Shown: positions 11,888 through 57,543, counted from the stretch's first letter. The stretch is DNA of 64,000 nucleotides from Carpediemonas membranifera BICM (GCA_019828565.1 JAHDYR010000024.1:6434-70433), one strand, 5' to 3'. A program made the numbers and translations. The notes: generated by a model not told the origin, from the sequence alone.

Positions 11888-12070
11888 CGCAACCAAAGTT
11901 GGTCACAGTTTCAATGATACGTGTTAACAATGCAACATAGACGGGTAAACACTGGTGTGAACTAATATATCCTCGCTAATTCACGTGACGTGAGTGATGT
12001 TGCACTTGTGACTATGAACAGACTCCTAGTTAATAGTACCGATCAAATTACCGAATACTTCATGTCATAT

Positions 12071-16547: not shown

Positions 16548-16554
16548 ATGGCGA

Positions 16555-34407: not shown

Positions 34408-34453
34408 CGGAGTCAACGACCGCAAAGAGTGAAATAAAATTCGAGCGATGCAG
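34408..34453 (+). repeat. 46-bp target-site duplication, left copy (right copy 37992-38037)
   Basis: 45/46 identity; includes the last 12 nt of tRNA-Arg. Confidence 0.85.
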
Positions 34454-37400
34454 CATCAGAGAATGTCGGTAGATCACCGACGATCACAAGAAGGAGGTGG
34501 GAGAATCATCTTCACAAGGTCTCCTGATGTGCCTGGTGGTACATTAGGGATCCAGGAGGAGCTTCTCCACGTTATCTCCGAAATCCGCAAAAATTTCGCA
34601 CAATACGTCCCTGATGAGGTCGTGAACGACTTCAACAGTAATCAGGAACTATTTGACGCTTTGCAGAACGAAGCAAACGTTAGAACTTGGCTTGGAGACG
34701 GGAAGTCCCGTAAGAACAAACGTCTGACTCTCGCAAAACTGCGGGAGATCCTCGACAGAATTCGTGCAGTTGCCGTGGCATACGAGGGTCGCAATGCGCC
34801 CAACGTCACGAAGTCTCGCATGACAATGATCGATACAGCGCCTGCTCATGCAGCCGAAGTCGTGAGGACTGTCGCCCGGATCGCTGGTGCGCCTGTTGGG
34901 TCAACCGACACCGCCCGCGCCCTCAGCCCTTCACCCCAGACTCAGTCTGCCCCCGTCCCCCGCCCGCCGATTCCGAGCCAACCGCCGGCTCCGAGTCAGA
35001 CCCCTCAACGCCCAGCAAGCCAGGCAAGCGAGGGCCCGTCCAGCGTTACACTCGACGCGTCCCAGACGCCAGAGTTCAATCAGCGCAGAGCGACGGCCCC
35101 CGTCCGCCCAGACTGTTTCCTCGACCCAGCGAAGGCCCTCTTCCTGGGTAAGCTCGCCCCACCCAAGCGCCGTCGCGCCGGGTTCGCGGAGGGCTTGATC
35201 AGCCGCCTGAAGGCAATCGCCGACGCCGAAGGCACGGACGCCAAACTTGCTGCCGCCGCGAGACTGTGCTCGTACGCGCAGACCTTGTACGCACCCCCGA
35301 AGGTCTCGGCTCGCAGGCCGAGAGCCAACCGCACAAGGCGCGCGTGGAACTTGGCCATACGTGGCTTCATCTCCAAGGCAGTGACAACGATCACGGGGTC
35401 GGAGACGACCCTCACGCCTGACGAGATCAATCAGTCTCTGAAGGAGAAGCTGTCTTCTCCGACAGGGCTTGTGCCGAACATCTCCCTCCCCGACGTGCCG
35501 GCGAACCCGCTCAGTGCCATCACGGTCTCGCGCAAGCAGATCAAGGCCGCACTCATGAGCCTTTCGCCGGAATCCGCCCCTGGACCGTCGGGCCTGTCAG
35601 CGCTACACCTGCGCATTGCCGCGAGCGTGAGGCGTGGAGACCTCGTAGCCGCCTTGGAGCCTGTCTTGCAGGACATCCTGGACGGTGAGGAGTACACGTC
35701 GATCTTCGCACACGCGATCCTGGTGCCGGTGCCGAAGGATTGCGGTGGGGTCCGCCCTGTCGCAATAGGCGAGGTGCTGCGCCGGCTGGCGGCTAAGGTC
35801 GCCGCAACAGTCGTCTTCCCAAGGCTTGTCGTCGAGGATGAGTTGATGGGGGACCAATTCGGGCTTGGCGAATCAGCCGGCCTGGAGCGGCTGGAGACGG
35901 CCACGCTGAACGAGTACATGAACGGGAGCACCATCGTGACGTTGGACATGTCCAACGCGTATGGCACGATGTCCCGAGATTATCTCGTGAAGGTGGTCGA
36001 GGCATATATTCCCGTACTCGGCCCCTACCTCCGCCGAATGTACGCCAGCGGCTTGCTGCTGACGACGACTGGCGAGGTGTGGGCCTCGGAGGAGGGCATC
36101 CACCAGGGGATCCTCTCTCCCCACTCCTCTTCTCGCTGGGCATGTTCCCTCTGCTGACGCAGTTGCGCGGGGAATTCCCGGACTTCACTGTTCGCGGATA
36201 CCAGGATGACGTTTCGGCGTCCATCCCGAGCCCCCTGCAAGACTACGAGACGGGCCGGAAGGCGAATTCATTCGTCTCTCGGTCGGAGCAGCTCTTTGCG
36301 AGTGTTGGGATGCCGTTGAACCGGTCCAAGTGTGCGGTCGCTCATCGCGAGTCGCGGGACGACAACAACGCTTCGGACCAGGTGACGCGGGCGCAGTCTT
36401 TCAAGCTGGTGGGTATCCCCATCTCCGTCTCCTCAGCCTTCCACGTTGAGTGCTGTACCAAGATCCTGAAGAAGGTGAAGGCCGTGCTCGACGCCGCCAA
36501 GGAGCTCTGCCGGGAGATCGGGTCGAAGGCCACGGCGGTGGCTCTGACGATTGTCAGGGTGTCTGCGCTCACCATCCCCATACATTTCTACCGCAACGTT
36601 CTCCCCACGATCAAGTCTACCACAGGCCAGGGCAATTTGCTGGGCAAGACGGCCGTCTTTGAACGGCAGTGTATTGCCCCAGCCGTCTTGGACATCCTGC
36701 AAGACAAGATCACCGATGCGGAAGAGATGAAGAAGTTCTGCCGGCGGCTAGGGCTGCCGGTGCATGCGGGCGGTCTCGGCTTGCCGATGCCGCTCGATGT
36801 CTGGGCTCCCGCCTACCTGGGGGCCTCCCGGCATCTGCTGGAGTTTGGCCTCAGCCGGCCCGACCTGGATAAGGTCCTCGCGCTGGGCGCCAACGTGAAG
36901 GATTGGCCCAAGGATGAGGCAGCGCTGAAGGCGGTCGGCAAGGACAAGCCGCAGCACGAGTTGGTGTGCCTGTTGAAGGAACATAATTTCAACACCAACC
37001 CTGCGGTGAAGGACAGCGTCGTCGCGCCCAACATCATCAGCGCTATGCTCAAGTCCGACCCAGTCTCTGTCACGAGGCAGTCGAACCGCCACGAGGTCGA
37101 CCGGGCCATGATCGCCGACCACCTGGGCCGGCCCGCCTTTAGCGACGCGGCTGGAGTGTGCCCGATCTGCTCTGAGAAGCACAGTCGTACTGTGGCTATG
37201 AAGGGCTGGTCGCACGCGGTGGTGTGCCCGTGCCTACGCGGTGACGCAAAGGTGCAGCGGCATGACGCCATCCGGGACGAAGTGATCAGGACCCTCAAGG
37301 AGGAGGGCGTGGCAGCCAGGCCTGAGAGGTGGCTGACGCCGAAGTCTGCAGAGGCGAAGCATCCTTTGCGGCCGTACAGAGTGCGCATGGACGTCGAAGT

Positions 37401-37991
37401 CAGGCCCGACGAGGGCGGTGTGAAACCCGTCATTGACATCGTCTGCTCGGACTACGTCTCCGACGCGCGGGCTGATAAGGTGAAGCAGTATCAGCACTTC
37501 AACGTTGATATGGTGCCTGCTGTTGTCAGTTCGAGCGGCCGTTGCGCGCCCTGGAAGGCTGGCGGTGTGCCCTGGCCAGAGAGGCTGGTCGAGATGAAGC
37601 TGCTGGACAACGCGGCCAAGGATCGTCTCGTGGACCGGGTTTTCGTTGCCAATTGGAAGTGGCAGTGCAGAGCCATCGTGGATTGGCTGACACAAGCCCA
37701 AGCTGCTCGCGAACGCGCGGCTGCTGCTGGGCAGGACATTGTGAGTGAGTAAGAACGGGAATACCACAACATTTCGCTGTTTTGATCTCACTTTGGTTAC
37801 TTTCGTTGTCTTTTGCGGAGAATTAGCTCCTTTCAAGGAGTTTTGGTACGTTTTGTGCGAGTGGATGCGTGAAATTGCGCAAAATCGAGCCTTGGTGCTC
37901 AGATGCGCGCTGCTGCTGAAAGTGAACGCAAACCGTGTTCCTTTACGCCGTTTAACGCAGTAAGCCGCGAGAGCGCCATCGACGACCGAGT
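34454..37991 (+). mobile_element. Non-LTR retrotransposon, CRE/SLACS-like RLE type; single ORF ~34463-37752 with a G-run frameshift near 36106
   Basis: SAPGPSG; VRPVAIGE; DMSNAY; QG(D)PLSP; GYQDD; GGLG; CPIC..H..C; RHD; RMD..IDI..KVKQY. Confidence 0.88.
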
Positions 37992-38025
37992 CGGAGTCAA
38001 CGACCGCAAAGAGTGATATAAAATT

Positions 38026-38099
38026 CGAGCGATGCAGGACTCGAACCTGCAACCACCTGATCCGTAGTCAGGTACTCTATCCAATTGAGCCAACCGCCC
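38026..38099 (-). tRNA. tRNA-Arg(ACG)
   Basis: Full cloverleaf GGGCGGT...CCTGA CT ACG GA TCAGG...GGTTCGAGTCC...ATCGCTCG, followed by TTTT. Confidence 0.93.
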
Positions 38100-38102
38100 T
38101 TT

Positions 38103-38413
38103 TGGCAAGGCCAGCGGAGCCAAAACTTCGGCGCGAGAGGTCGAGGATGATTCGATACGATCTCAAAGACGGGATCGTGCGTCTCATAAGGGCGGTTCAG
38201 TTGTTCAAGAGCGAACTGAAACCGCGGGGCAGCCTTGCTCCCGATCCCCTCCTTCGGAGGGTGACGCTCGGCATTACGTAAGGTCGAGCGAGGTAATTTA
38301 CTCCGGCTTACACAGAGATAGACCCGGGACGATGCGAGAACGCGACACAATAAATTACCTACCCCCCCCCTGTGGGAATGGACGGAGTCTACCGGATCGT
38401 CAGCCTGTCTGAC
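38103..38413 (+). mobile_element. Solo A-X-B remnant of a YR retrotransposon
   Basis: Starts TGGCAAGGCCAGCG like E4 A; same spacer fold; C-run plus a B repeat similar to E5 B1. Confidence 0.75.
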
Positions 38414-38551
38414 GGCGGGGCACGCCTTCAATAGGACGTAGGGGTCCTGCGCCGGATACGGTTCGATTTGCTGATCTGATTCTGCGAAGAGGATCGAGAT
38501 CAACTCCGAGCAAGTCAGTTCGGACGAAGGGCAAAGGAATAAGCTTTAGAG

Positions 38552-39070
38552 ATGGCACCGACCAACAACGAGACACCTGAGCAACTGCAGGAGACCATTG
38601 AGCAACAACGGGACATCGAAGTAACTCCGAAGTCCAACGAGCAACTCGAGCAGGAGCTCAAGACCTTGCGGGGCCTTATTTCCAACCTTGAGGATGAACG
38701 GCGCTCCAACAACTGGACCCCTCCGCATTCGGACTCCATGCGAGGGGAATGGGCCTTCCTTCAGCGCCTCTACCGAGCCATTCGGTTTGACGCGTCCACC
38801 TCATCAACCGAGCTCCTCAACAGGCTCTACTCTCGCCAGAGGGCCCTTGCCATCAAGGACCGCTACGGGTTCCACGTAGGCCTGGCGGTGGAAACCGCCA
38901 CTGACGCTCTGCTCAGCGCTAAGCCAACTGCTACGGAGGCGATCATCGAGGAGAAGATCCTCTCCACCCTTTCCAAGATCCCCAGGCTTGGCGACCGCCA
39001 GCGTGAACGCGCTTCTTTTCAGCGCTCCCGTCGCCCACCGAAGCGAAGCGGCAAGCCCGCCAGAGATTAA
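38552..39070 (+). CDS. E3 gag-like ORF1
   Basis: RLYSRQRALAIKDRYG, homologous to E4/E5 ORF1. Confidence 0.8.
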   Translation: MAPTNNETPEQLQETIEQQRDIEVTPKSNEQLEQELKTLRGLISNLEDERRSNNWTPPHSDSMRGEWAFLQRLYRAIRFDASTSSTELLNRLYSRQRALAIKDRYGFHVGLAVETATDALLSAKPTATEAIIEEKILSTLSKIPRLGDRQRERASFQRSRRPPKRSGKPARD

Positions 39071-39201
39071 GAAAACATCCGAAAAGACTCTCTCTAGGCG
39101 ATCGCTCTCACTCTCTTGCCTCTCCCCACTCCTCCCCACCCATGCTGTCTGGAGGGGGTGTATGGGTGGCAGTATACACCTACGGAACAGAGGGGCTCTG
39201 T

Positions 39202-42200
39202 TGTGCCGGATGGCAGCAGAAAACGGGGAAATCCATTTACCTTAAAGTGCACTGGGAGTGAGGGAGATGCTGTGACATCTTGCCCCCCTAAGCCGAAGCT
39301 TATTGGCTCTAAGGTAAGCACGGGCGAGCGAGACTCCGGAGAGTGCAGTCGCCGGCTCATAGGTGGGTTCGTCGTAGCCTTCCCACTTCACCTTCAGTTC
39401 GAGGATGTCGTCCTTGACGCGGTGCTTGAGGATCTTCTCAACGATAAAAGTCTCCTCGTCTGAGGAAGCTAGCTGGCGGAGCTTGTTGAAGTGGTAGTTC
39501 ACGTGGAACGGGAGCAGGTGATCCCGGTGGACGGTTGTGGTGGTGTTCGTGATGATGTCGGCGATAACGACGGCCTTGTGGTCGAGGATCTCGAGGATCT
39601 TGTAGGGTCCCAGGTGACCGTGCAACTTGGGGGTCCTGTTGCGCTGTACGAGGACTAGGTCACCTGGCTTGAGCTCGGTCTCTGCGGTCTTTCCTTTGGC
39701 AAGGCGCTTCTCGACAACCTTACGTTGCGTCTCCTCCCCCTTCTTGGAAAGGGACTTCAGGTGGTTAGTGAGGTTGTCTAGGTATTCACGATGGGAGGAT
39801 AGGATTGTCTCGGAAGCTGTAGGGTCAGTCGGGGCGAGTAGCCGGGCTCTAGTGGCGGACGGGTCCAAATGCTCGCCGTAAAGCATGCTGTGGGGGGTGA
39901 GGCCTGTGGCAGAGCAGATAAAAGTGTTCAGCAAAAGCTGAACGGCAGGGAGAAGCCTGATCCACTCGTCAAACTTGTTAAAGTTGAGCGTGAGGCAGCG
40001 GAGGTGCTTCATCACTTCGGCGTTACGGCGTTCAACAACGCCGTTGGACTGGGGATGATACGGGAGAGTGTGTTGTTCGGTGATCTCGGCATCAGACAGG
40101 AGGGCCTTGATCACGGCACCAGTGTACTCCGGCCCGTTGTCAGCCTTAATGGCGGCAGGGATGCCATGACGGCAGACAAGTTGTTGCCAGATGGCAGAGG
40201 CAGCGGCATCGGCAGTGTTCTCATCGCTGGCATATAACTCCGTGTACCTGGTGAACATATCAACAAGGACGAAGATGTACTTGCGGCCGAACATGTCTGC
40301 GGGGATGGGGCCTATGGTGTCAATGGCGACCGTGTGGAAAGGCTTATACACGGCCGTGGTCCCTAGGCTTGACTGAGCGAACTCAGAGAGTCTAGCCTTG
40401 AGACAGATCGGACAGGAGTGGACGTAGGCGGCGATCTCTTGAGTCGCGCTGACCCAGGTGTAGCCGTCATCGCGGAGGCGGGTGTACGTGGCTCTAGCTC
40501 CGTGGTGGCCACGGTGAGCGATGGCAATAAGCTCTTGGCGTAAGCCCTTCGTTTGATCACAGGTCGGGATCATGCAGGCTCCGTTCCGGCGTCGGAGACC
40601 ATCAGCGTCTACCGGCAGCTTGCTGATCTCCGGGTCCTCTCCTTGGAAGTGTGCCAGTCTGTCCTTGAACCGGGCATCGACAGATATGGCGGCGACGGGT
40701 TGGGCTGTAGTCTGGCCGTGGCCATACCGGCTGAGCGAATCAGCTATGACGTTATCCTTCCCGGGAACGTGTGTGATTTCAAAGTTGAAGTCGGCTAGCG
40801 TCAGACGCCAGCGGAGGATCTTGTCGTTCGTCGCGGACTTGTAGATCATGTAGATCAGATTACGGTGGTCTGTTCTGAGGGTTACATGCTTCACGCGCAG
40901 AAGGTGGGTGAGGGAGGGGTGCGTGAAGGCGTATACGATGGCGAAAAGTTCCTGTTCGCAGGTAGCCCATCTGGTCTGGGTGGGGGTGAACGTATGAGAG
41001 AAATAGGCCAGCACTTGTCTGCCCGAGTTGTCGTTGGGAGTCTGGTAGAGTACACCTCCGGCTCCGACATTGGAAGCGTCGGTCTCGAGGGTCCAAGGAA
41101 GGGACAAGTCTGGGTGAGCGATGAAGAGGTCATCGGTGAAGAGGGACTTAAGGGTGTTGAAAGCCTCAGTCTCGGCTGGGCCGAAGCTGAAGACGGCGTC
41201 CTTCTCTAGGAGAGCGGTAAGGGGCTTGAACAGCTCATGGCGTTTCTCTGAGATGAATGAGGCTAAGAACTGGAACTTGCCGAGCACGGTCCTGAGCCCG
41301 TGGACATCAGTGGGGAGGGGAAGCTCTCGTAGGGCGCGGGTGCGCTCAGGGTCTACGTGAACTCCAGCCTTGTCGACAATGAAACCAACTATGGGGGCCT
41401 CGGAATAGCCTATTCGGCACTTCTTTGCGCCTAGGCGGACGTTGGCTTCTTCCAGGCGAGTGAGGGTGTCATCGAGAAGCTTGAGGAAAAGTTCCTCGGA
41501 GGAGTACATGAAGAGGTCATCGATGTACGGGTCAACCCCCTTATGGAGGATGGGCCCGAGGATAGTCTCGATACCTCGCTGGAAATGCGACGGGGCATTG
41601 GCAAGCCCAAAAGGCATCCTGGTGAACTGTTCATGCACGCCAGGGGCGATGAACGCGGTCTTCTCCTTGTCCTCGTCAGCCATAGGCACCTGCCAATAGC
41701 CTGAGGTCAGGTCCAGGGCGGCAAATCGGTCGCACCCACTTGCTCGGCGAAGGAACTCGCGCATGTTGGGGAGGGGGTGTCGATCACGGGTGGTGTGGCT
41801 GTTGAGTAGGACATAGTCGATGCAAAGCCGCCAAGCGTCCCCCTTTCGCACGAGGACTACTGGACTGGCATATGGGCCGGTGTTGGCCTCGGTGATGCCC
41901 TTGTCGCGTAAGTCTGAGACATGATCGTGCAGCCACTCCGTCTTGGCTGGAGCCAGAGGGCGTGGCTTCATGTTGACAATGTAGCCGTCGGTCGGGATGG
42001 TCATGGGGGGGAAGGCTGCCGGCTCTTCGGGGAGGTTTGGATCGAACACGGCGTCATGCTTGCGGAGGATCTCACGGATAGGGTCGTGTAGTTGATCAGG
42101 ACATACGTCCACTTCATCGCTGAAGAACTGTGGAGCAGCTGAGGCTTCAGCGACAGGGACTGGGTCTAGGTACTTGTGGGGAGGGAGCCCTTCGGTGGTC

Positions 42201-43781
42201 TGGGGGTCTTCGTTGCAGTCGACGCCTGTAGGGACGAAGAGGCCCTTGGCGCTGAGGAAGCCAAGAGCTCTGAGGATATCACAACCAACGAGTATGTGAT
42301 CATCGTCGCGTTCGATTACGTGGAAGGTGGCCTCGGTAGTGACCATGGCGTTGCCCGCAGATGGAAGGCTCAGACTCACCTTTGCTACGCCCTTCGTCAT
42401 AAAAAGCTGCTTATTGACGTCCAACAGAGCAATTGAGACGGATGTGTCGATCGTGGCCTTGAGGCGCTCGGCCAACAACTGCGAAATACAGCTTGGGGCG
42501 GAACCGGAATCAATCAGGATTGTCTGCGTCTCGCCGTTGACTTTCCCTTGGACGGTGAAGTAGGATGAGTCGGGCTGTGGTTCGTCGACAGACTGCACCG
42601 GCTGGGCATGGGCGGTCTCATGCACTGGTCTTCCCTTCTTGAGGGTGCTGCTGGGGCGGAGGTTCATCCTACCAGCGCGGCGGTCGGACTGCTGAGTGGG
42701 ATCCGCATTTGGTTGAGGCACTGGCAGCTGGCGGTTGGCGTTGCCCGAAGTATGTCGGGCTTGGGTATGTGGCTGTTGCTTGTCATGCTGGCCGGTCGGT
42801 TGTGCCGGGTGCGGCGACTGGTTGGACTGCTGGGTGGAGCCTCGCTGGGCGGCGTCGGCCTTAGGGCACTGCCACCTCCAATGCCAACCACCACAGAATG
42901 GGCAGGGGGTCTTGGAGGGTGTGGCCGGGAGCCCATGTGTTCGGCCTATGGCGGGGCGGCCTTGGCGGCTCTGCCCGCCACCTTGGCGAGGGCGGTCAAC
43001 GGAGGTCAACACGGCAGCTGACGTGGTGGACGGTGTCAAAGACGAGATGTCGAGGCCTGCCAGATCGCTTGCCAGCGCCTGGAGGCGCTCGACCTCGGTC
43101 TTCACGATCTGAACGGTATCCTCGAACAGGCGAGCGCCTTGTAGCTCAACCTCGGTCTTGAGGCGAGCTTGAAGCTCACTTGGCCTGATGGCGGCGAGGA
43201 GTACACGGGCGGCGACCTTGCTCAGGCCCCGATGAGCGGGGCTAGGCCCGGATGGCGAGGAGCCCAGTAGCTCAGCGAGAGCGTCTACGTCGGGGTCGTC
43301 ATCATCAGCTTCAGGCTTGGGCGGGTCGTGGTCGGGGATGAACGTTAGAGCGTGCTTGTAGAGCGCACGGAGCTCTCGGACGTACAAGAGGATCGAGTGA
43401 AGCTTGTTGTCGTGATTAGGCATCTGGAGGGCACGCATTGCTCGGAGGCATCCATTGAGTGTTGGAGGTAGGAGGTGCGTGAGGAGAGAAGCCTCGATAT
43501 CTTCAATGGTTGCGGAAGAGAGATCAACTTCATATACGAAGCTCAAGGACATCAAGAATCTCTTCTGAAATACAGTCGGATGGCGAAAGAGTTGGAAATT
43601 GGGCTTTGAGGACTCGGAAGTGCCGAGTGAAGGTTCTGATCGTAACAGGATCTAGATCAGATAGGAACAGATGATTCTGCGTTACCATTTTCCAGGAGTG
43701 ATCACTGTGCCGGATGGCAGCAGAAAACGGGGAAATCCATTTACCTTAAAGTGCACTGGGAGTGAGGGAGATGCTGTGACA
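39202..43781 (-). mobile_element. Complete Ty3/gypsy chromodomain element G2
   Basis: Identical 76-bp LTRs at 39202-39277 and 43706-43781 (TG..CA); TSD CTGT; PPT AGGGGGGCAAGA. Confidence 0.95.
39242..43688 (-). CDS. G2 gag-pol (PR-RT-RH-IN-chromodomain); probable true ATG at 43688 with a 1-nt indel near 43548
   Basis: CPFCGGWH; IDSGS; YIDD; TDAS; HHG..CPIC; ADNG; KVKWEGY. Confidence 0.92.
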
Positions 43782-44695
43782 CTGTCAAAAATGTCCGATT
43801 TAGAACGTCTTACTCTGGCACCATGTAGCCCCCTTCCTGATGCACCTTTGAGCACGTGCTTGGCCTGCGATAATTACTTGGCGTCCCGTAAAGCCCAAAA
43901 ATTAATCAAATCGTCATCAAATGCGAATTAAAGATGCTGATATTGCTCATGAAACGACTCTGCTGATCAGCTGGGACTCTACGCGGCGATATGGCATGGC
44001 AAGTCTCTACACTTTGGAGACAATTCGGTCCCATGGTTCCTACCTTGACCCACGTTGTCTCGCGCGCGCGAGGGACTCACTAAAAGGATATATCAACACT
44101 GGGAGCAGAAAAAAGGCACGGCGAGATGCAGGCGCTGTTGCTGAGCTCATTTTCCGGATAAGACCCGTTTTACCTCAACCCATTCATATTGGCGGCTGTT
44201 GCTTCGTTTTTGATCAAATCAAATGGAAACCAAAACGAGATCCGGGAAACGAGGATGATTGGGAGAGATAGACACATCATAAGGTCTTTAATATAGTAAT
44301 GCACCGTCAATGAGAAGTTCTTGGTTCCTGAAATGGATTATTGATCCCAAACGCTTTTCTTTGAGGATAACGCACTTATAGCGGTGATTTCCACACAATT
44401 CATCCAAATGCTGATCAAAACATCAGAACTGCAAGTAAAATGGGTATAGATCGTTTATCCACGGAGATATCAATTGCTCCCAATCCCAGCTTGCAAGAAA
44501 AAAGTTAAGGGGCTGTATTGGGGCTTGCACTGATATCTCTATATATGCCGACACAGTCACTGGGCTGCCCATCACTGAACAGCTCTAGCCCAATACAAAA
44601 ACTTGAGGGCTCGAAGTTTTGGCCTTCTCGGAAAAGGGTGGCAGTATACTGCTACTTTTCTTTGCTTGAGTAGCTGTATTACACCCCCTCCAGAC

Positions 44696-46586
44696 CTACC
44701 TTACAGGATCCCCGAGGAGCAGCGAAATGCGCTCGTCCATTGGCAGAAGCTTCTCAACAACCATACTCCACGTCCCCTGAAAGAACTACTTTCCATTTGG
44801 GGCACTTCCAGCAACCTGGACGTTACGATAGCCTCAGATGCTTCGAAATTCGCGGCAGGAGCCGTCATCAGCATCGATGGAGCGAAGAAGACGATCTCTG
44901 TACCAACAAGCACCAACAAGGACCGTCATATAACGGAGCTGGAGTTCTTCGCTGCAATGGAGGCCATCAACTTCGTGCTGCAGGAGACAGCGGTCTCGGA
45001 CCGCGAGATCCGCGTATTCTCGGACTCTACGGCGGCTGTGGCGTGGCTCAACAGGCAGGGCTCGTCCCGCTGCCCTCAAGCAGTCATTGCAGAGCTCCAT
45101 CGCATCCTCCCGCGCCTGAGAGCCAGAGGACTGCTACTCAGGGCGGTGCACGTGAGCGGGCACCTGAATGTACGCCCGGATCGGCTGTCACGGCTCAGCA
45201 AGGTCGATTGGGGCACGCCACAGGTGGTCCTCGACCATATCATCGACTCTTGGGGGCCTCTACAGGTGGACGTCACAGCACAGGAAGGCAAGACGCTGCA
45301 GATCGGGGCAAACCCGCTCATGCCCCTTACTCGCGCGCAGGATGGTCTCTCATCCCGGTGGGAGGGCCTCAGAGTCTACGCAGCACCCCCGTGGGCCCTC
45401 ATCCCGGCCACTCTATCGAAGCTGGCCTCCATCACCACCCCCTCACAGGACGGAGATCCCTCCAGCTGGTCATCAATGGCAGTAGTGCTCGTGCCGGACA
45501 TAGTGTCGGCCGCGACCCTCGCCCTCAAGCGCTTAACGCCCCACAGGCGGTACTTCCGCCTTCCTCCGGGCTCATTCGATGGGACAGAGCTACAGAGGAC
45601 GGCACGGGCCGATGGCACGGTCAGACTGATGGCTCTCGCGTTCCGGCTGAAGCCTTCAACACCCTCGTTGGACACCCCAGGCTCGGAGGCCTCTCAGACT
45701 CCTACAAACGCCACATCGCGGGTACTCTGGTGACATTCGTCGACTTAGCCTCAACAACACCCACGGTAGAGCAGGTAGCTACCTGGGTGCGGCAGCAGAG
45801 AGCCTCCTGCAGCGAGACCACGATCATGCGGAAGGCCCAGCTCATCATCACTCATGGGCCAGACATCTTGGGCATCCAGCTCCCTGAACACTTCCGTCCG
45901 GCCATTAAGGAGGCCGCAAGGGCGCAGCCGGCAAGCCGATCGGTCAGGCCCCACCCATAAGACTGCCACTCTTCCACAAAGCACTGTCAGAGGCAGCCGC
46001 CTCCGGGCCCCTACCGAAGACGTGGGTGCAAGCCTTCGCCTTCTCACTAGTGGCCTACTCGACGACCTCAAGACCAGGCGAGATCTTCGGATTGACAGGA
46101 GGAGACGTGAAGCCCGCGGGCGCGCGCGGTATAACGATCCGTATTCAGGCGACTAAGACCGGGAGGTCTAAAGTGCTCAAGCTCGTACCGGACGTGCGGG
46201 GTCACCCGCTTTCCCCTGCGCTGTGGCTGGCCCGTCACATTCAGAACCTCCCTCAATCTGATCTGAACGAATCTATCTGGCGTGCGCCGCGTGTCGATGG
46301 CTCGCTCTCATCCACGCCCATCTCCTTCGACCTACTTGGAGACTACATGGCTGGCGTCTTCCACAGAGTCAGCATCCGGGCTCACGGGCTTAGGCGCGGC
46401 TCAGCCGCCGACCTAGTCCTGGCGGGCGTTTCTCCCTATGTAGTCGCAGCCAAGGGTACATGGGCCGACATCAATTCGATGCTCCGCTATATCGACGACA
46501 CGATGAGACTTGACCGCGCAACGTCGGCAAAGTGTTTCACGCCCCACATGGCACAGGGGCTGCCGGACAAGATTGAGTTCGAGTGA
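44696..46586 (+). pseudogene. E3 RNase H/MT remnant and tyrosine recombinase (frameshift near 45942)
   Basis: SDAS; YAAPPW; SRPGE; ATKT; HGLRRG; GTW; LRY. Confidence 0.85.
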
Positions 46587-47617
46587 AAGAGAGACTGCAA
46601 GAGAGCAGCAAGGGGCCCATCAGCCGGGACGGGTGGTCTGGGGAGGCTACCTCGCCCTCGGCCGGGCCCTATCGCGTGGACCAAGTGTGGTCGCGATAAA
46701 TTTTGAGAGAGTTATGTTGTTGGCGACCGGGATTCCCCATGGGTTCACATTTGACATACCCAATGTCTGCTTGTCAGACTGGCGGGGCACGCCTTCAATA
46801 GGACGTAGGAGTCCTGCGCCGGATACGGTTCGATTTGCTGATTCTGCGAAGAGGATCGAGATCAACTCCGAGCAAGTCAGTTCGGACGAAGGGCAAAGGA
46901 ATAAGCTTTAGAGATGGCACCGAACCGCGATTCGAATCTGGTAGCTCGAGACAGGAGAAACTGAATTTGTTTCCCTCGTCAGACGAGCTGACGAGTCGGC
47001 AGACTCTGTCTTAACCATCCGGGGGGGGGGTGAACAATTTACTGTGATCTTCTGTAGCACTATGTAAACAGGAAATTGTTCCGCCGGGCCCTTACTGGGA
47101 CCCAGACTCACTCCCCTCGAAAGGGGAGGATTGGCAGCCAGGCTGCATTGCGACTTATTTCGCTTCTCCTTCGTTCTCTGGGTTCCTGATTTGATCTGGT
47201 CCTGATTTGGCCTCAATCTGATGCGAATCAGAATGCCTCGACCGCTCAGCCGAAGATTGTCCACTACGCTGGCCTTGCCAGTCAGACGAGCTGACGAGTC
47301 GGCAGACTCTGTCTTAACCATCCGGGACTCGTCGCCGCCACGATCCCTGGCTCATTTTCTCTATCCATCATTTGACTGGATCAAATTTGGCGCACATCAT
47401 CTTGGATTCTTAAACCTCCCGACGGTTCCTCTGTATTCCACCCGTGCAGGTGGAGAGCTCGAAAAACGTGCCTAGAGGTCTCAACACCGCCTGGTTGCCG
47501 AGATACGGCACTTTTGATATTTTCTCTCTCTTTTGAGCGTATATCGCCGTAGTTTCGCTAGAATCCGTGCGTAACCTCTCTAAGGTATCTCCCTACACTA
47601 TAAGGAACTCAATATCA

Positions 47618-50443
47618 TCACGTTTTACGATCAACCTCACTAAGGTCCGCGATCGTGCTGGAGCAAGCACTCCTCAATGCTGCTCCAGGCCTCAACGAGG
47701 CAACAGAAGTGCTGTAATCGAGGCGTAGGACGTCCTCGATATAGCGTATCAGTGATTTGGTATCCACCCAAGTGCCCTTCGCGGCCACGACGGGAATGGG
47801 TATGCCCGCAAGGACCAGGTCCGCCGCGCTGCCGCGGCGAAGGCCATGAAGCCTTGCCCTCGAGGAGCGAAGGATCCCCTTAATCTGGTCCTCAAGCTCC
47901 GAGAACGCAAAAGACCAGAGTGGATCCTCCTCCCCAGCGTGGGCGTCCATCCGATTAACGACGACCTCGGAGAGCCAATGCGCAGGGTCCAGCTCGCCAT
48001 CGACCCTTGGTACCAGCTTCTCTATGACCTCACGCCGCGTCTTTGTGCCCTGTATTGCCACGCGCAGCCCTCGCCGACCATCAGTGGACACGTCCCTCAT
48101 CCGCAAAGAGAATATCTCCATAGGCCGCGATGTGGTGGCGTAGATGGTGAGCGCGAAGGCGAACGCCTCTCTCCATAGGGCCTGCCGGCGGGCCTCCGGC
48201 GTGGAGGCGTGGAGTCTTGCAGCTAACATCTGGGCCCTGATGGGCAGGGCTGGGCCCATCGGTCGACCAAGCGCGTCTCTCGCCTGCTCGATAACCACCG
48301 CCGTGCCGTCCACGGGGACCTCCCAGGGGACAACCCGGTCGAAGAACCTCACTATTAGGTTCCACTTCGACATGATGGTGGGGCGAGCCACCCTCTCCGC
48401 CTGGTCGTGTGCCCACATTCGAACGAGCTCGGTGTCGCCACGGGCCTCGGTGTGGCTGTCGCGGAAGTCAGCGAACTGCTGCAAGACCCCGGCCACGTGT
48501 CTCTTGTCCTTGAATCTGGCTAGCATGTCACTGCTGACGGCCTGGTCGAAGACCTGATGACCATGAAGAGGGCCATGAGCCTGAACGTCCCGTCCGACTG
48601 GAGCGGTGTGACCTCCGACAGGTCTGCCTCCTCCTTCCGAATCCTGAAGTAGAGCCGGTGCTCCGAGAGCTCTCTCAGTGCCATCGCTGTTGGAGAGCGG
48701 CTGTCCGACACAAGCAAGACCAGAGCATCCGGACATGCTGAGGGGGAGCTGGGATGGTCCATCTGGAGGCGTTGCAACTTCGAATAGACCTCCAGCAGCA
48801 GGCTGAACGGGACTACTGCCAGCCACCTGCCGACTGACCAGTCCTTGTCCATGAACTGTATGCTCCCGGAGGCCTCTGTCGCGTCCTGCTTTGCTCCAAG
48901 CCACCCGGAGGGCCATATCTCTCCTTGAACCGGGCCCCACGTCGTGATTATGCGCTCGAGCATCCGTCTGGGTGGTGATAATGTCTCGGATCGAGATAAG
49001 GCGTCGGCAGTGACGTTGAGGTGACCTGACACGTGCACGGCCCTGACCCTGATCTGTCGCCTGCTGAGCGTGGGCAGCAGGGCTCGGAGGGTCTGGTCCA
49101 CCACCTCTGGCGCCTTTGTAGACCCCTGGTGGTTCCACCAGGCCACCGCCGCAACAGAATCCGAGAAGATAGTGATCTCGCTCGGGTCTCGAAGGTGTTG
49201 GAGAGTGAGCTCCACAGCCTGGCAGAGGGCTCGAAACTCTAGCAGGGTGATATGCTCCCCCTTCGGGGCCGAAACAGCGAAGGTGTGAGGGTCCTGGCCT
49301 GGGATCAGGAGGACTCCGCCGAGGCCGGCCTCCGAGGCGTCCGTCATCACCGTAACCTGAAGCTTCGGGGACATGCCCCACAAGTGGGTGAGCTCCAAGA
49401 AGCTGCGGACTGGGGAAGGGCGACTCAGGCGGGCTTGCCAATCGATGAGGGCCGCCTCTGCCTCGCCATGGACTCTCGTCCTGTATCGGGCCTTGATGTT
49501 GGCCAAGCAGCGTTGGATAGGCCTGATGGCCGCCCGGCCCTCTGGCCAGACTATCGACGCAAAGCCCAGGTTCCCGAGGAGTCTCTGCAGGCTGTGGAAG
49601 GTGACGCCCTGCTGGAGAGCCTCCTCCACTCTGGACAGGTACTTGTGGCGCTTCTCCTCCTGAAGGGAGACTCCATGCTTCCTCGAGTCGAGCACGAAGC
49701 CAAGGAAAGTCGTCGTGGGCGATGGTGTCAACTGGGATTTCTCCCGGTTGATTACGAGGCCTAGGTCCGTAAGCAACCGAACTATCCCCGGCATCGACGA
49801 CTCTAACAGGGCTTTCGGACCGCAGAAAAGCCAGTCGTCTAGGTATATCGTCAGGTTGATACCCGGGAAGGCACGCGCGACAATCTGTCCGGCGGTCATC
49901 ATGACCCGTTGAAAGTGGTAGGGTGCCGCGCTCCATCCAAACGGCAGGACGTTGAAGCAGTAGGGGCGCCCGTCTACCACAAAGCCCAGGAGTGTCCGGT
50001 CCTGCGGTCGGATGCCCAGCTGATAGTACCCCTTTGTCAGGTCGATGCGCGTCATGTAGTCGTTCTCTCTCATCTGGCAGATGGCTTGCCTGACGCCTCG
50101 AAGCCGGAACGACCTTCTCTCGAGCGACACTGCATTGAGTGACCTCAGATCGTGAATGAGGCGCGTCTCTACAGGTGTCTTCGGCACGGTGAAGATTGGC
50201 GAGATGAGACTCGGTGCCCGGCACGGGCTGGCCGCTCCCAAGGCGAGCAGCGTCCTTAGATGATCTCGGAAGGCCTTTCGATCCCTCGGCCGCGGTGAAG
50301 GAAGGCTGGGGTGCCTCGGCCGCGCACTCACCGAGATGGGGATACCCTCTCGTAGCCACGAGACCACCTCGGATGGCGCGTGTAAGCGCTCCCAAAGGGT
50401 CCAGCGGCTGTTGATGCACGGGAAGGGTCTCATCTTCGGGCAC
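47618..50443 (-). CDS. E4 tyrosine recombinase
   Basis: SRPME; GTKT; HGLRRG; GTW; IRY. Confidence 0.9.
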   Translation of the reverse strand: MPEDETLPVHQQPLDPLGALTRAIRGGLVATRGYPHLGECAAEAPQPSFTAAEGSKGLPRSSKDAARLGSGQPVPGTESHLANLHRAEDTCRDAPHSRSEVTQCSVAREKVVPASRRQASHLPDERERLHDAHRPDKGVLSAGHPTAGPDTPGLCGRRAPLLLQRPAVWMERGTLPLSTGHDDRRTDCRACLPGYQPDDIPRRLAFLRSESPVRVVDAGDSSVAYGPRPRNQPGEIPVDTIAHDDFPWLRARLEEAWSLPSGGEAPQVPVQSGGGSPAGRHLPQPAETPREPGLCVDSLARGPGGHQAYPTLLGQHQGPIQDESPWRGRGGPHRLASPPESPFPSPQLLGAHPLVGHVPEASGYGDDGRLGGRPRRSPPDPRPGPSHLRCFGPEGGAYHPARVSSPLPGCGAHSPTPSRPERDHYLLGFCCGGGLVEPPGVYKGARGGGPDPPSPAAHAQQATDQGQGRARVRSPQRHCRRLISIRDIITTQTDARAHNHDVGPGSRRDMALRVAWSKAGRDRGLREHTVHGQGLVSRQVAGSSPVQPAAGGLFEVATPPDGPSQLPLSMSGCSGLACVGQPLSNSDGTERALGAPALLQDSEGGGRPVGGHTAPVGRDVQAHGPLHGHQVFDQAVSSDMLARFKDKRHVAGVLQQFADFRDSHTEARGDTELVRMWAHDQAERVARPTIMSKWNLIVRFFDRVVPWEVPVDGTAVVIEQARDALGRPMGPALPIRAQMLAARLHASTPEARRQALWREAFAFALTIYATTSRPMEIFSLRMRDVSTDGRRGLRVAIQGTKTRREVIEKLVPRVDGELDPAHWLSEVVVNRMDAHAGEEDPLWSFAFSELEDQIKGILRSSRARLHGLRRGSAADLVLAGIPIPVVAAKGTWVDTKSLIRYIEDVLRLDYSTSVASLRPGAALRSACSSTIADLSEVDRKT
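48520..50433 (-). CDS. E4 RT / RNase H / MT-like ORF
   Basis: LPFGW; YLDD; TDAS; FSDS; HLNVTADALSR. Confidence 0.92.
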   Translation of the reverse strand: MRPFPCINSRWTLWERLHAPSEVVSWLREGIPISVSARPRHPSLPSPRPRDRKAFRDHLRTLLALGAASPCRAPSLISPIFTVPKTPVETRLIHDLRSLNAVSLERRSFRLRGVRQAICQMRENDYMTRIDLTKGYYQLGIRPQDRTLLGFVVDGRPYCFNVLPFGWSAAPYHFQRVMMTAGQIVARAFPGINLTIYLDDWLFCGPKALLESSMPGIVRLLTDLGLVINREKSQLTPSPTTTFLGFVLDSRKHGVSLQEEKRHKYLSRVEEALQQGVTFHSLQRLLGNLGFASIVWPEGRAAIRPIQRCLANIKARYRTRVHGEAEAALIDWQARLSRPSPVRSFLELTHLWGMSPKLQVTVMTDASEAGLGGVLLIPGQDPHTFAVSAPKGEHITLLEFRALCQAVELTLQHLRDPSEITIFSDSVAAVAWWNHQGSTKAPEVVDQTLRALLPTLSRRQIRVRAVHVSGHLNVTADALSRSETLSPPRRMLERIITTWGPVQGEIWPSGWLGAKQDATEASGSIQFMDKDWSVGRWLAVVPFSLLLEVYSKLQRLQMDHPSSPSACPDALVLLVSDSRSPTAMALRELSEHRLYFRIRKEEADLSEVTPLQSDGTFRLMALFMVIRSSTRPSAVTC

Positions 50444-50481
50444 TGGAGGGGGGGGTTGGTGGATGGTGGGCTGAGGGTGGT

Positions 50482-50577
50482 CGTGAGGAGAGCGGTCGTG
50501 AGGAGGGTGACCGTGAGGAGGGTGACCGTGAGGAGGGTGATCGTGAGGAGGGTGATCGTGAGGAGGGTGATCGTGAT
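50482..50577. repeat. 15-bp tandem repeat (CGTGAGGAGGGTGAY), ~6 copies, between E4 gag and RT
   Basis: Direct inspection. Confidence 0.8.
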
Positions 50578-50598
50578 GATGATGATGATGGTTTGGAC

Positions 50599-51102
50599 TT
50601 ATGAGCGGTTGTTGCCGGGGCGCTTCGGGCCCTGGCCGCCTCGCTTTCGAAAATCCTTGCCTGGCTTCTCCGTAAGGCGGGGGTTCTTCGAGAGCGTCCG
50701 GAGGACCAGGGTCTCGATCTCCGACTCGGTCATCTCTGGCTTCTCGGCCAGGGCGGCGCGACCGGCGGTGCTGACCGACTGGCCGGCGAGGTAACCGTAG
50801 CGATCCTTCACCCAGAGCACCCGGTGACGGAGGTAGAGTCGGGCGAGGATGGCGAAACCGCTGAGGCGACGGAACTTGAATCCGCGGTACATCTCCTCAA
50901 TAAACTCGGCCTCCTCCTTCATCGTGTTGGAAGCTGGCCGTTTCCAGTTGATGAGCGACTCGTCGGATAGCATCTTCACCATGGAGGAAAGGTTCGAAGT
51001 TGGTTGTGCGATCTTTGTGGTCTCTTCGAGTTGTTTCTTCAGTTGCTCGATTGCATCTTGCATCTCCTTGATCGTGGCGGCGTTCTCAGATTCCTCAGGC
51101 AT
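50599..51102 (-). CDS. E4 gag-like ORF1
   Basis: RLYLRHRVLWVKDRYG, closely similar to E5 ORF1. Confidence 0.85.
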   Translation of the reverse strand: MPEESENAATIKEMQDAIEQLKKQLEETTKIAQPTSNLSSMVKMLSDESLINWKRPASNTMKEEAEFIEEMYRGFKFRRLSGFAILARLYLRHRVLWVKDRYGYLAGQSVSTAGRAALAEKPEMTESEIETLVLRTLSKNPRLTEKPGKDFRKRGGQGPKRPGNNRS

Positions 51103-51240
51103 TCTGATGACTTATTTCGCTTCTCCTTCGTTCTCTGGGTTCCTGATTTGATCTGGTCCTGATTTGGCCTCAATCTGATGCGAATCAGAATGCCTCGACC
51201 GCTCAGCCGAAGATTGTCCACTACGCTGGCCTTGCCAGCT

Positions 51241-51313
51241 CCACCGATAGCAGAGTCGACTGATCCCCGGCTTCTGTTGCCGGAGGTCGCGGGTTCGATT
51301 CCAGTTGGGGTCA
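51241..51313 (+). pseudogene. tRNA-like sequence (pseudo-tRNA or SINE head)
   Basis: 73 nt; A-box-like TAGCAGAGTCG at position 8; perfect B box GGTTCGATTCC at 51292-51302; 5-bp stem with 7-nt loop; acceptor stem poor. Confidence 0.6.
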
Positions 51314-51738
51314 GACTTTCCACAAAGCTCAGTGGAAACGAAACAAAAGGAGCAATAACGCGAGACGTACTCAGGTCCGGCGAGTTAACAGGACGTTGAG
51401 GGAAGAGCCGAAGCCAAAGTGGGCTAGGCAATGAGGCCATGGAACCCGCAGCCGAGGGGCACCTCTTGCCACTGCGGGGTGGCCACCTTTATCCGCCGCG
51501 AGGCGTGAGTCGGTTGACCGGTGGTACGGTCACCGACGCGAAATATTTCCGCTTACACAGACAAGAATAGCGTAAATATTTCTCCCCCCCATGGGTTCAC
51601 ATTTGACATACCCAATGTCTGCTTGTCAGACTGGTAGGTGAGCGGAGCGCCACGCCCACGCTTCGGCTGAGCGGTCGAGGTTAATCTGATCGAATTGATT
51701 CCGATCAAATCGTCGCAGTTCAGGAAAGAGAGCAAAGA

Positions 51739-52251
51739 ATGGCAAGCATGAACGCCAATGAGCAAGAAGAGCTAACGCAAGCGACGGCCAAGATCGCAGA
51801 ACTCTCCGGAGCTTTGGACAAGCTAAAGGAGCAGCTCGATGACAAGACCGAAGAGAGGAAGCTCAAAACCACCGTGGCTCAGCTTCAGGAGGAGGCAAAT
51901 CTTTCCTGGAAACGCCCTGCTTCCCAGTCAATGAAGGAGGAATCTGAGTTCCTCGAAGACCTCTATCGAGGCTTCAAGTTCGGACGCCTGAACGGCTATG
52001 GACTGCTCTCGCGCCTGTACCTCCGCCACCGTGTTCTGTGGTGTAAGGACCGGTATGGTTACCTCGTTGGTCTCTCGGTCGCCACTGCCGGCTCGGCGGC
52101 CCTCGCAGAGAAACCCGACATGGGCCCTGAGAAGATTGACAGCGAGGTTGTGTTTAAGACTCTGGCGAAGAACCCGCACCTCAAGGAGCGAACGAGACAG
52201 GACGAGGATTTTCGGAAGCCGAGGAAACCCAAGAGGGCAAACAATCGGTAA
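51739..52251 (+). CDS. E5 gag-like ORF1
   Basis: Homologous to E3/E4 ORF1. Confidence 0.85.
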   Translation: MASMNANEQEELTQATAKIAELSGALDKLKEQLDDKTEERKLKTTVAQLQEEANLSWKRPASQSMKEESEFLEDLYRGFKFGRLNGYGLLSRLYLRHRVLWCKDRYGYLVGLSVATAGSAALAEKPDMGPEKIDSEVVFKTLAKNPHLKERTRQDEDFRKPRKPKRANNR

Positions 52252-52675
52252 ACCGCCCTCTGTCCAAAATTCATCATCATCATTCATTCCCTCCTCTTCA
52301 TCCATGTCCTCCTCAATCTCCTCCCCCATCGCCTCCTCCCTCTCCCCCACCGTCCCCTCCAACGTCCCCTCACCCATTACCATCCCCTCAGAGCCATCTG
52401 ATAGCGCTAGAGACCAATTGCGCGGAAACACGTCCATTCCCGAGCATCAACAAGACGTGGCGGCTCTGGAAGGCATTAGGCGTGCCATCAGAAGTGGTCA
52501 CGTGGTTGCACGACGGCGTACCAATCTCCCTGTTCAGCAGACCGCGGCATCCGAGCCTCCCACCAGTGCGGTCGCAGGACAGGAAAGAATTCCGTCGCCA
52601 TCTACAGACGCTCCTCCACCTCGGAGCAGCAGTGCCGATGCGAGCACCGACGCTCGTCTCTCCGATTTTCACCAT

Positions 52676-55600: not shown

Positions 55601-57539
55601 TCTCCGGGGAAGTCGTCCCCCGTGGCCTGGGGCGCCGAGCAGGACGCCGCTTTCGCTAAGATGAAAGACCTGGTCACCGAACACACGGCACTCGCCCTCC
55701 CAGACTTAGACAAGCCCTGGACCTTGGAGACCGATGCCTCCTCAGTAGCGATCGGCGGGGTCCTCTGGCAGGGCGAAGGAGTTGAGAAGGTTCCCCTCGC
55801 CTTTTATTCCAAGACCTTGGACGAGACTCAGCAAAGGTGGTCGACCGTCGAACAGGAGCTTTACGCGATCATCCACTGTGTAACTCGACCGGAGTTCTCA
55901 GCCCTCCTTAAGATTAAGCCGTTCTCTCTCAGAACCGATCATCGGAACCTTATTTGGCTCCTGAGAAAGACGGACGAGGAGGGCACGAAAAAGCTTACTC
56001 GCTGGCGCCTGACAATGACCGAATACCCCTACTCCATCGCCCACATCAAGGGCGTCCACAATGTCGTCGCCGACTCGCTGTCCCGTCCTAGCAGCGTCCC
56101 AGAGGACCGAGACGACCTCAAGGCCGCTATCGAACAGGTCTCCAGTTCTCACCGTCACCTCATCAACCAGGCCCACGCCGGTGCACAGGGCCACGTCAGC
56201 GTCGCTCAGACGATGGAAAGTCTCCGCAACGCCGGGCAGTCTTGGCCCGACATGAAATCGGACGTCCGGGGAGACCCTCAGAAGTTGCGCCGTCTGCCAG
56301 AAGGTTAGACCCCCTGCCCGCGAGAAGACGAAGTGGCACTCCACGCAGCGACTCAAGCCCTTCGAGACGGTCCAGCTTGACACAATAGGCCCCCTTCCGG
56401 AAGAGGCCGGCATGTCCTACATCATCACGATCGTGGATGTCTTCTCCAAGTTCACGATCCTCCGTCCGGTCGCTACTACAAAGGCCGAAGAGGCTGCAGC
56501 AGCGATGCTGGATGTGTGGTCCACGTTCGGAGTCCCAAAGGAGATTCAAACCGACCAGGGCACTCAATTCCGTAACGCCCTCATTGCCGAGTGTAACGCC
56601 ATCATCAGTCTTCAGCACAGGTTCTCAACCCCTTACCATCCGGCCAGCAACGGAGTCGTTGAACGACTCAACGGCACGATCATGTCTCGCATGAGAGCGC
56701 TCCTCCTAGACGCAGAGGACGGCAACTGGCCCGCCTATTTACCGCTCGCTCAACACGTCATCAACTCTACCCGCCACGCCACCACCGGTCGCTCCCCTTT
56801 CGAACTGCTGTTCGGCAAAGAATCGACGCTACGGGTCGCCCCGATCGCTCTGGCAAACGCCACGAAGAGCTGCACCCCTGGGAGCGTTGATGAAGGTGAG
56901 ATTGTCCGCTTCCAGGAGGACGTAGCCGCTCTACAAGCCCTCGCCCGCGTCAAGATTCGCGCGTACGAGGCGCGCAAGGCCAAGGCCACAGCAGACACTC
57001 ATGCGTGGGAGAGAGAACAATACGTTCTCCTGCGCTACCCGGGCAAGCCCCCGGCTAAGATCTACACCCCCCTGCGCGGACCCTTCCGCATGGAGGGGAA
57101 GGGCGAACACCCGAACACCTACCGCGTCCGTGACCTCGTCACAAGATGCGTCAGCACGGTCCACGCCGACAGACTGGTCCGATTCGAGACCGATTCTTCC
57201 GACACCGAGCTCGAGCGGATCGCCGCTTTCGAGCAAGGCGAACAGCCCGTCAAGGAGATCGTCGGTCACAAGAAGAAGAAGAACGGCTCATTGGAGCTCC
57301 TCATCCGTTGGGAAGGCCTCACACCCGACGAAGACTCCTATGTACCCTATAACCGGTACTATGACCAGCTAGCGGCTCTCGATGATTACCTCGTCGCTCA
57401 TCCAGAGCATGAAGCCGCGTTCGCCGCCGCCAAGAAGAAGTTCCGCAGTTCCGGGCGCCGTTAATGCGTCCGCATGGGGGGAAGTGTGACCCTAAACTGC
57501 GGGAGTTGGTTGCATAAAACTCATTCGTGACACGGCACA
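52676..57539 (+). mobile_element. Complete Ty3/gypsy chromodomain element G3
   Basis: 55-bp LTRs at 52676-52730 and 57485-57539 (2 mismatches); TSD CCAT; PPT GGGGGGAAG. Confidence 0.95.
52751..57464 (+). CDS. G3 gag-pol (G-run frameshift near 56268)
   Basis: FDIGA; PFGLKNAP; YVDD; TDAS; GHVS..CAVCQ; TDQG; LIRWEGL. Confidence 0.92.
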
Positions 57540-57543
57540 CCAT

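Follow-up and report, generated by a model that had tools for sequence, protein, structure and literature searches.

DIRS-order retrotransposons of Carpediemonas membranifera lie 1–4 nt upstream of tRNA genes, always in divergent orientation

Insertion beside tRNA genes is the textbook case of a retrotransposon safe haven in compact genomes, so far worked out only for integrase-bearing long terminal repeat (LTR) elements and endonuclease-bearing non-LTR elements of yeasts and dictyostelids. Ty3 of Saccharomyces cerevisiae inserts 1–4 bp upstream of tRNA transcription start sites, and its integrase binds TFIIIB (PMC5911963); among dictyostelid elements, TRE5 lies upstream of tRNA genes in opposite transcriptional orientation and NLTR-A 2–6 bp upstream (PMC5006619, PMC5911963), and DIRS-1, a tyrosine recombinase (YR) element, inserts into other DIRS-1 copies and not at tRNA genes (PMC5006619). 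A 2018 review of retrotransposons targeted to RNA polymerase III (Pol III) genes lists only Ty1/copia, Ty3/gypsy and L1-type elements (PMC5911963), and a review of target-specific transposons mentions YR elements solely for the microsatellite-specific Cryptons. Here we describe DIRS-order retrotransposons docked at tRNA genes of the metamonad Carpediemonas membranifera BICM, starting from a stretch of 64,000 nucleotides (nt; GCA_019828565.1 JAHDYR010000024.1:6434-70433; hereafter the window) and extending to the whole assembly (24,237,836 bases in 69 contigs). The genome paper describes that assembly (24.2 Mb, 69 contigs, 57.1% GC) without mention of tRNA or transposons (PMC8516963), and a 2026 preprint covering Dam-bearing elements of Carpediemonas does not mention tRNA. 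A preliminary description of the window had known of no DIRS-order precedent, and the searchable literature bears it out, naming only LTR and non-LTR elements as tRNA-targeted; within that literature, which leaves subscription-only papers and Repbase Reports beyond reach, tRNA targeting by the DIRS order is new.

The insertion point of these elements lies 1–4 nt from the mature 5′ end of the tRNA gene, at a distance specific to the element family and always with the element divergent from the gene, and any isoacceptor can be used. The Rfam model RF00005 scored 63 tRNA genes, of which we took the best-scoring 40, each with 6 kb of upstream sequence. Twenty-three of these 40 carry a recognised YR-element start 1–4 nt upstream of +1, with spacers of 3 nt (10 genes), 2 nt (7), 1 nt (3) and 4 nt (3), and in all 23 gag, reverse transcriptase (RT) and YR read away from the tRNA. 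The other 17 comprise three genes with a repeat-derived junction lacking a definable start, eight empty genes, and six tRNA-Ala(AGC) genes with a separate repeat context. In about two thirds of the sample, element DNA has taken the place of the sequence upstream of the tRNA gene, which bears on how far Pol III promoters tolerate foreign upstream sequence. The same isoacceptor can be found both docked and empty (Asn, Ile), so tRNA identity does not set occupancy; docked spacers are T-rich and resemble the native leaders of empty tRNA genes, indicating that the spacer is host sequence.

From the element side, 43 starts with TGGCAAGGCCAGCG were examined in families F1 and F2 (40 fetched and three in the window). 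Sixteen are internal junctions between the terminal repeats of the element's own family or subfamily (two of them unclear), leaving 27 outer starts. Twelve of the 27 adjoin a tRNA or tRNA-like 5′ end, namely 11 antisense tRNA genes (Leu-CAG, Leu-AAG, Lys-CTT twice, Asn-GTT twice, Ser-CGA, Arg-ACG twice and Thr-AGT twice) and one tRNA-like module; 11 adjoin the 3′ end of another YR family, and four were left unassigned. Once one-base differences in ARAGORN calls among identical tRNAs are reconciled, only a single tRNA case departs from a 3-nt spacer. A recurrent non-tRNA flank of F1 and F2 starts (...CTGCAAGTCG) was considered as a further kind of Pol III gene and rejected: it is the 3′ end of the GCATACC family, and these cases are stacks of elements.

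Both searches combined give 28 distinct docked tRNA genes of 10 isoacceptor types, all 28 in divergent orientation. At least eight families are docked, distinguished by termini that differ from family to family: TGGCAAGG (F1 and F2), TGGCGGGG (E3), TGGTAGG (E5), GAGACG, GCATACC, GCGTACC, GCATATC and GCAGGTACGG. The preliminary description, from two cases in the window, had proposed that what is shared is position rather than sequence and had noted that both elements point away from the tRNA, naming a genome-wide enrichment of starts next to tRNA genes as its test; the census is strongly positive on that test from either side, and both points hold across the genome. Its figure of exactly 3 nt stands for families whose terminus begins with TGG (14 of 15 cases) and gives way to a range of 1–4 nt in the others. 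Given a 4-nt window, one orientation and a few hundred element ends in 24 Mb, a rough chance expectation is about 1e-5 to 1e-4 per tRNA gene. The census so far exceeds this figure that chance is excluded, and we are highly confident that YR elements target the region upstream of tRNA genes.

The docked elements are DIRS-order retrotransposons with split direct repeats. They share the layout A1, gag, RT/RNase H, tyrosine recombinase, B1, A2, unique segment (U), B2, in which B1 (about 46 nt before A2, ending GTCWGAC in five families) recurs as B2 at the 3′ end beyond the unique segment; five families show both the B1/A2 junction and the repeated B end. The arrangement A1...B1-A2-B2 follows the logic of PAT/Ngaro elements and implies a circular intermediate with a B/A junction, and the unique segment of about 145–410 nt between A2 and B2 departs from the usual repeat layout. 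In E4, the complete F2 copy of the window, the RT is recognised by Pfam RVT_1 (4e-19, 69.6 bits against a cut-off of 29.6), a domain that database relatives also carry, and the open reading frames (ORFs) match neither rve (DDE integrase) nor a protease in Pfam. Pfam Phage_integrase matches all eight YR sequences compared, drawn from six families (best 4.8e-14); the catalytic R, K, HxxR, W and Y are invariant in them, and the YR profile matches Cre across both domains (E 1.6e-11 to 1e-9). The recombinase is thus, judged by these residues, catalytically intact, as expected of the DIRS-order inserters that the preliminary description had named. Lacking LTRs, aspartic protease, DDE integrase and target duplication, the docked elements are not of the Ty3/gypsy type, and none of the sampled tRNA-proximal elements is gypsy; those gypsy elements that the window does contain sit within docked elements, and the first of them shows a target-site duplication (TSD). 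For the Dam-like methyltransferase domain that DIRS1/PAT groups have between RNase H and YR, the Pfam Dam match in E3 is weak (E 0.016, 15 bits); PF05869 is present in distant database relatives. Matches to the YR profile number at least 137 across the genome, with 335 YR candidates noted, and many copies are 99–100% identical with open frames, so the families have recently been active.

In several families the YR frame stays open over 870–1124 codons and overlaps the whole RT ORF in another frame (window 47618-50443, minus strand; also L048, L049, L054 and L076). It resembles the description of DIRS-1 ORF3; its N-terminal overlapping part is putative coding sequence only, and a 941-amino-acid ORF of this kind had no phmmer match in the PDB.

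The window holds a single stack on one tRNA-Arg gene: a solo F1 unit, then E3 (with a nested gypsy element and E4), then E5. Its parts are as follows.

38026-38099, minus strand: tRNA-Arg(ACG) gene, +1 at 38099, the anchor of the stack and the sole ARAGORN tRNA of the window (RF00005, 60.6 bits; contig C24:44459-44532).
38100-38102: spacer TTT, 3 nt, between tRNA-Arg +1 and the first element.
38103-38413, plus strand: solo F1 unit, 311 nt, A-U-B, starting TGGCAAGG; A is 38103-38222, U the unique segment, and B the last ~46 nt, ending GTCTGAC.
38414-46977, plus strand: E3, first part, with A1 at 38414-38561 (without its first T) and a gag ORF at 38552-39070.
39202-43781, minus strand: chromovirus (Ty3/gypsy) nested in E3, with 76-bp LTRs and TSD CTGT, outside the tRNA-docking system.
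44603-45960, plus strand: E3 remnants of RT, RNase H and a methyltransferase-like region; YR ORF at 46026-46586.
46779, plus strand: end of E3 B1; A2 runs from 46780 and is followed by 55 nt up to the E4 insertion point.
46978-51237, minus strand: E4 (family F2), complete, 4260 bp, with ends TGGCAAGG and GTCTGAC.
51109-51237 and 47152-47280, minus strand: E4 A1 and A2; B1/A2 junction at 47281/47280, B2 end at 46978.
50599-51102 and 48520-50433, minus strand: E4 gag-like ORF and RT ORF.
47618-48517, minus strand: E4 YR domain, the C-terminal end of ORF 47618-50443, which lies in another frame and overlaps the entire RT ORF.
51238-51240: spacer GCT (plus strand), 3 nt, between the E4 5′ end and the tRNA-like module.
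51241-51313, plus strand: tRNA-like module in the E3 3′ region, with box A at +8, a perfect box B (GGTTCGATTCC) at +52 and degenerate stems.
51238-51631, plus strand: E3, second part, the remaining 3′ region comprising U with the tRNA-like module and B2, ending GTCAGAC at 51631.
51632-60404, plus strand: E5 (TGGTAGG family), directly adjoining the E3 3′ end (0 nt); A1 from 51632, gag at 51739-52251.
52676-57544: gypsy element nested in E5; E5 pol at 57538-60005 and E5 B1/A2 junction at 60275/60276 (plus strand).

The 3′ end of E5 was not located within the window. The preliminary description had placed the first element correctly, at 38103 behind a TTT spacer 3 nt from tRNA-Arg +1, and had mislabelled it a solo A: it is an A-U-B unit that matches the A2-U-B2 segment of a full F1 copy at locus L045 in 309 of 310 positions compared. 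The F1 A repeat itself measures 120 nt in a genome search, in which 298-nt matches are also present. In E4, A1 and A2 are 100% identical over 129–130 nt, the second copy lying 3957 nt further in, and the E3 proteins are 98–100% identical to those of L075, an intact E3-family element docked at tRNA-Met. The nested gypsy elements (39202-43781 and 52676-57544) are both complete and of chromovirus type with very short LTRs (76 and ~60 bp); Pfam finds protease, RT, RNase H, integrase and chromodomain in the first.

E4 offers the closest view of an insertion. Its TGGCAAGG starts at 51237 on the minus strand, three nt follow, and the tRNA-like sequence runs from 51241, where in-register alignment with tRNA-Asn by way of box A sets +1; the distance from box A to box B is 44 nt, the value also seen in genuine tRNAs here. 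ARAGORN does not call the sequence 51241-51313, and the Rfam tRNA model gives it 14 bits against a cut-off of 29. The 3-nt geometry claimed for this site therefore holds in the tRNA-Asn register, and a reading of the sequence as a decayed chromosomal tRNA does not: 51239-51633 is itself a repeat, 97% identical to the L075 3′ region and 95% to a copy on contig C54, and the module belongs to E3. L075 runs uninterrupted through ...TTTCCCTC GCTCCACCG..., while in the window the halves end at 46977 and resume at 51238 with E4 exactly between. Measured against this contiguous paralogue as an empty site, E4 sits between ...CCCTC and GCTCC... with no nucleotide duplicated or lost, so that E4 is nested in E3, its ends are exactly known, and the insertion was clean and without target duplication. 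The insertion point of E4 is thus 3 nt upstream of a tRNA-like module belonging to E3. Two other copies of the E3-type region (C8 at ~186-192 kb and C54 at ~257-262 kb) break at this same point, and on C8 an opposite-strand YR gene is located where the tail of a nested element would be. The GAGACG family carries a similar module; two YR families therefore have a sense tRNA-like module in the 3′ unique segment (window 51241-51313; L052 at about 3755-3830) with canonical spacing of box A and box B, for which a Pol III promoter, a landing pad and a relic are candidate roles.

Complete elements beside a tRNA are almost always directly followed by the 5′ end of another YR element, with 0–1 nt between. 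Four such stacks read outward from the tRNA as follows.

L076: TTTT, GAGACG element, F1 without its first T; readable as a 4-nt cut into tRNA-TTT-TGGCAAGG.
L045: TGT, F1, G, GAGACG element; readable as a 3-nt cut into a 4-nt spacer.
L048: AT, GCATATC element, T, TGGCAAGG; readable as a 2-nt cut into a 3-nt spacer.
Window: TTT, solo F1, E3 without its first T; readable as a 3-nt cut into a 2-nt spacer plus the E3 T.

In each of the four, the proximal spacer and the nucleotide left over at the next junction together make up the spacer expected of the distal element. These leftovers, including the distal elements that have lost their first T, fit a cut measured from the tRNA, and the pattern suggests that each new element enters beside the tRNA, displacing older ones away from it.

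Taken together, these results lead us to an overall explanation that we hold, with moderate confidence, to be the best available. The integrating form would be a double-stranded circle with a B/A junction (GTCWGAC/TGG...), predicted from the repeat layout, and the element's own Cre-like recombinase would recombine this junction into the target at a fixed point. If the distance is measured from the tRNA gene, a newcomer would enter between the tRNA and the resident element, producing head-to-tail stacks. The tRNA-like module in the 3′ region of some families, with its box A and box B, would act as a second landing site, which would explain the presence of E4 inside E3. The position itself may be set by an element protein tethered, as in Ty3, to the Pol III initiation complex at the transcription start, with no specific DNA sequence being read. 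We favour such a tether over direct reading of the tRNA gene because eight families with unrelated termini use a common landing zone, because the targets differ in sequence, because the site lies where the Pol III start is expected, and because a degenerate module keeping only box A and box B appears to have drawn an insertion in the correct register.

Several observations weigh against this explanation. The B ends of F1, F2 and E5 carry a short stretch of GTCTACCGG type that resembles an antisense D-arm in the 3-nt register and hints at sequence mimicry. In a search that is weak for a divergent metamonad, Pfam gave no match in the genome to either the Brf1 C-terminal domain or the TFIIIC B-block. 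Pol III genes other than tRNA were not seen to be targeted: the 5S genes lie in the ribosomal DNA array, and the only U6 candidate, itself below threshold, lies more than 1.5 kb from any YR element. Modal spacers fit only five of the eight stack junctions.

The chief competitor to the tether, which we think possible though doubtful, is that some element protein, whether the recombinase or another, recognises generic features in the 5′ part of the tRNA gene (box A and D-arm, or the acceptor end) and cuts at a fixed distance without any host factor, which would be a relaxed form of the use that bacterial integrases make of tRNA attachment sites. Tyrosine recombinases are normally sequence-directed, and the missing Brf1 and TFIIIC matches, the D-arm-like stretches and the retention of box A and box B in E4's target despite its degenerate stems can all be read this way. 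Yet the D-arm and acceptor sequences of the targets differ strongly (Leu, Ser and Arg against Lys and Asn), the landing zone is common to eight families with unrelated termini, and the tRNA-like B end is absent in four to five other families. Scanning B ends by position weights against the antisense 5′ parts of tRNAs revealed no general homology, with a weak signal for F1 and F2 in the top 1–4% of background; the same scan found no identity segment of the prokaryotic type between the element attachment site and the tRNA gene. The candidate idea that B ends are attP-type mimics of the tRNA 5′ part was accordingly rejected as a general rule. The stretches at issue, GTCTACCGG and GTCTGCCGACT, lie in the B ends of F1 (38380-38413), F2 (47281-47315, minus strand) and E5 (60240-60275) and are like the antisense D-arm of tRNA-Lys and tRNA-Asn.

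We consider it improbable that the elements recombine mainly into resident YR copies, in the style of DIRS-1, and merely took over their tRNA association from a few ancient founders. DIRS-1 does insert into copies of itself (PMC5006619), tandem arrays do exist here (for example on C11, with 3.9-kb spacing), and the 11 of 27 outer F1 and F2 starts that adjoin another element's 3′ end would be natural products of such a habit; but young, 100%-identical F1 and F2 copies directly adjoin 11 tRNA genes of seven isoacceptor types with different spacers, E4 landed at a tRNA-like module instead of an element end, and it is a cut placed by distance to the tRNA, and not to an element end, that accounts for the distal elements without their first T. 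Random insertion followed by selection, or joint copying of tRNA and element by segmental duplication, is very improbable: the genome is compact (24.2 Mb) and some tRNA downstream flanks are common to several loci, but selection cannot give single-nucleotide precision and one orientation in 28 of 28, the loci with common flanks differ in spacer (TTT against GTG; ATT against CGC) or in tRNA, and the common flanks are other retrotransposons docked at tRNA 3′ ends.

Returning to the Pol III tether, we offer as a tentative extension that a YR may have been harnessed to the Pol III initiation complex, the third, chemically unrelated machinery with Ty3-like docking after DDE integrases and target-primed reverse transcription, and that the module of E3 and the GAGACG family may be a portable landing pad that draws insertions into the element and not into host DNA.

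Other retrotransposons also flank tRNA genes in this genome. Directly behind the tRNA-Arg of the window lies a non-LTR-type element (34448-38025, plus strand; ORFs 34448-36157 and 36079-37752; RVT_1 3.6e-7) that ends at the tRNA 3′ end, and its last 320 nt recur in the flank of another tRNA-Arg copy on C5; similar common flanks stand behind Lys/Asn and Thr genes, so that retrotransposons occur on both sides of tRNA genes. The six tRNA-Ala(AGC) loci (L067-L072) have one upstream sequence in common, in which the first 14 tRNA nt and leader recur about 4 kb upstream and the interval holds RT-bearing ORFs that point to the tRNA; such an arrangement may belong to a further tRNA-specific element, one that copies part of the gene. 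Elsewhere in the window, 27944-34180 (plus strand) contains two more tandem YR retroelements, 25–37% identical to the E3 and E4 proteins, in which the GTCWGAC motif was not found, and 7819-16886 is bounded by 914-nt inverted repeats that are 99% identical, with more copies at 8821-9230 and 11566-11887; the latter could be a DIRS-1-type element with inverted termini.

The best protein relatives of the element ORFs in NCBI are assigned to C. membranifera. Outside this genome, related elements were represented by one marginal locus among viral contigs and one short contig among metagenome contigs. An RT with 43% identity was found on a 3.4-kb contig without the element's 5′ end, a gag profile search matched only C. 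membranifera proteins, and three distant Dam-bearing DIRS-like contigs carry no tRNA. At L088 (PPCM01006382.1, 590-2405, in another assembly, GCA_002919055.1), a tRNA-Thr(CGT) in divergent orientation has its 5′ end 530 nt from the start of a 403-amino-acid ORF with a related recombinase domain; the DNA between them is AT-rich, and the ORF is not docked at −4.

The docked elements add to tRNA-gene targeting a third retrotransposon order and a distant lineage, the Metamonada, with single-nucleotide precision and strict polarity. They raise the question of how a recombinase of the Cre type, ordinarily dependent on a defined DNA site, selects a position set by a transcription complex or by generic tRNA-gene features; if the tether is real, they would be an example from nature of a site-specific recombinase steered by a partner protein, of relevance to recombinase engineering.

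Each of the known systems shares part of this behaviour. Bacterial and archaeal integrases recombine in the 3′ part of one specific tRNA gene through an identity stretch borne by the element. Elements that use such attB sites resemble the present ones in their tyrosine recombinase, their circular intermediate (here inferred) and their use of a tRNA gene as landing site, but here the site lies upstream of the 5′ end, many isoacceptors serve, and there is no general homology. With PAT/Ngaro-type elements and DIRS-1 the docked elements share RT and YR, the lack in E4 of protease and DDE integrase, the A1...B1-A2-B2 arrangement and the lack of target duplication, and with DIRS-1 also a YR frame overlapping the RT frame (PMC5006619); they differ in integrating position-specifically at tRNA genes, which the searchable papers do not report for this order, and in the unique segment that separates A2 from B2 and, in two families, holds the tRNA-like module.

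TRE5, TRE3, DGLT-A, Skipper-2 and NLTR-A of Dictyostelium offer the parallel of several unrelated families that use tRNA genes in one compact protist genome; those, however, are all LTR or non-LTR elements, at distances mostly of 13–150 bp as against 1–4 nt here. Ty3 makes a 5-bp target duplication, whereas the elements docked here make none, and they combine a Cre-like tyrosine recombinase with fixed orientation, head-to-tail stacks and a tether that we infer. Ty3 itself relies on a DDE integrase acting on linear cDNA and can insert in either orientation (PMC5911963). In landing a few base pairs from the start or 5′ end of any tRNA gene, leaving the gene intact and finding a safe haven in a compact genome, the two are alike, and non-random, position-specific insertion at tRNA genes of many isoacceptors is a trait that the docked elements share with the functional class of Ty3, TRE5 and DGLT-A.

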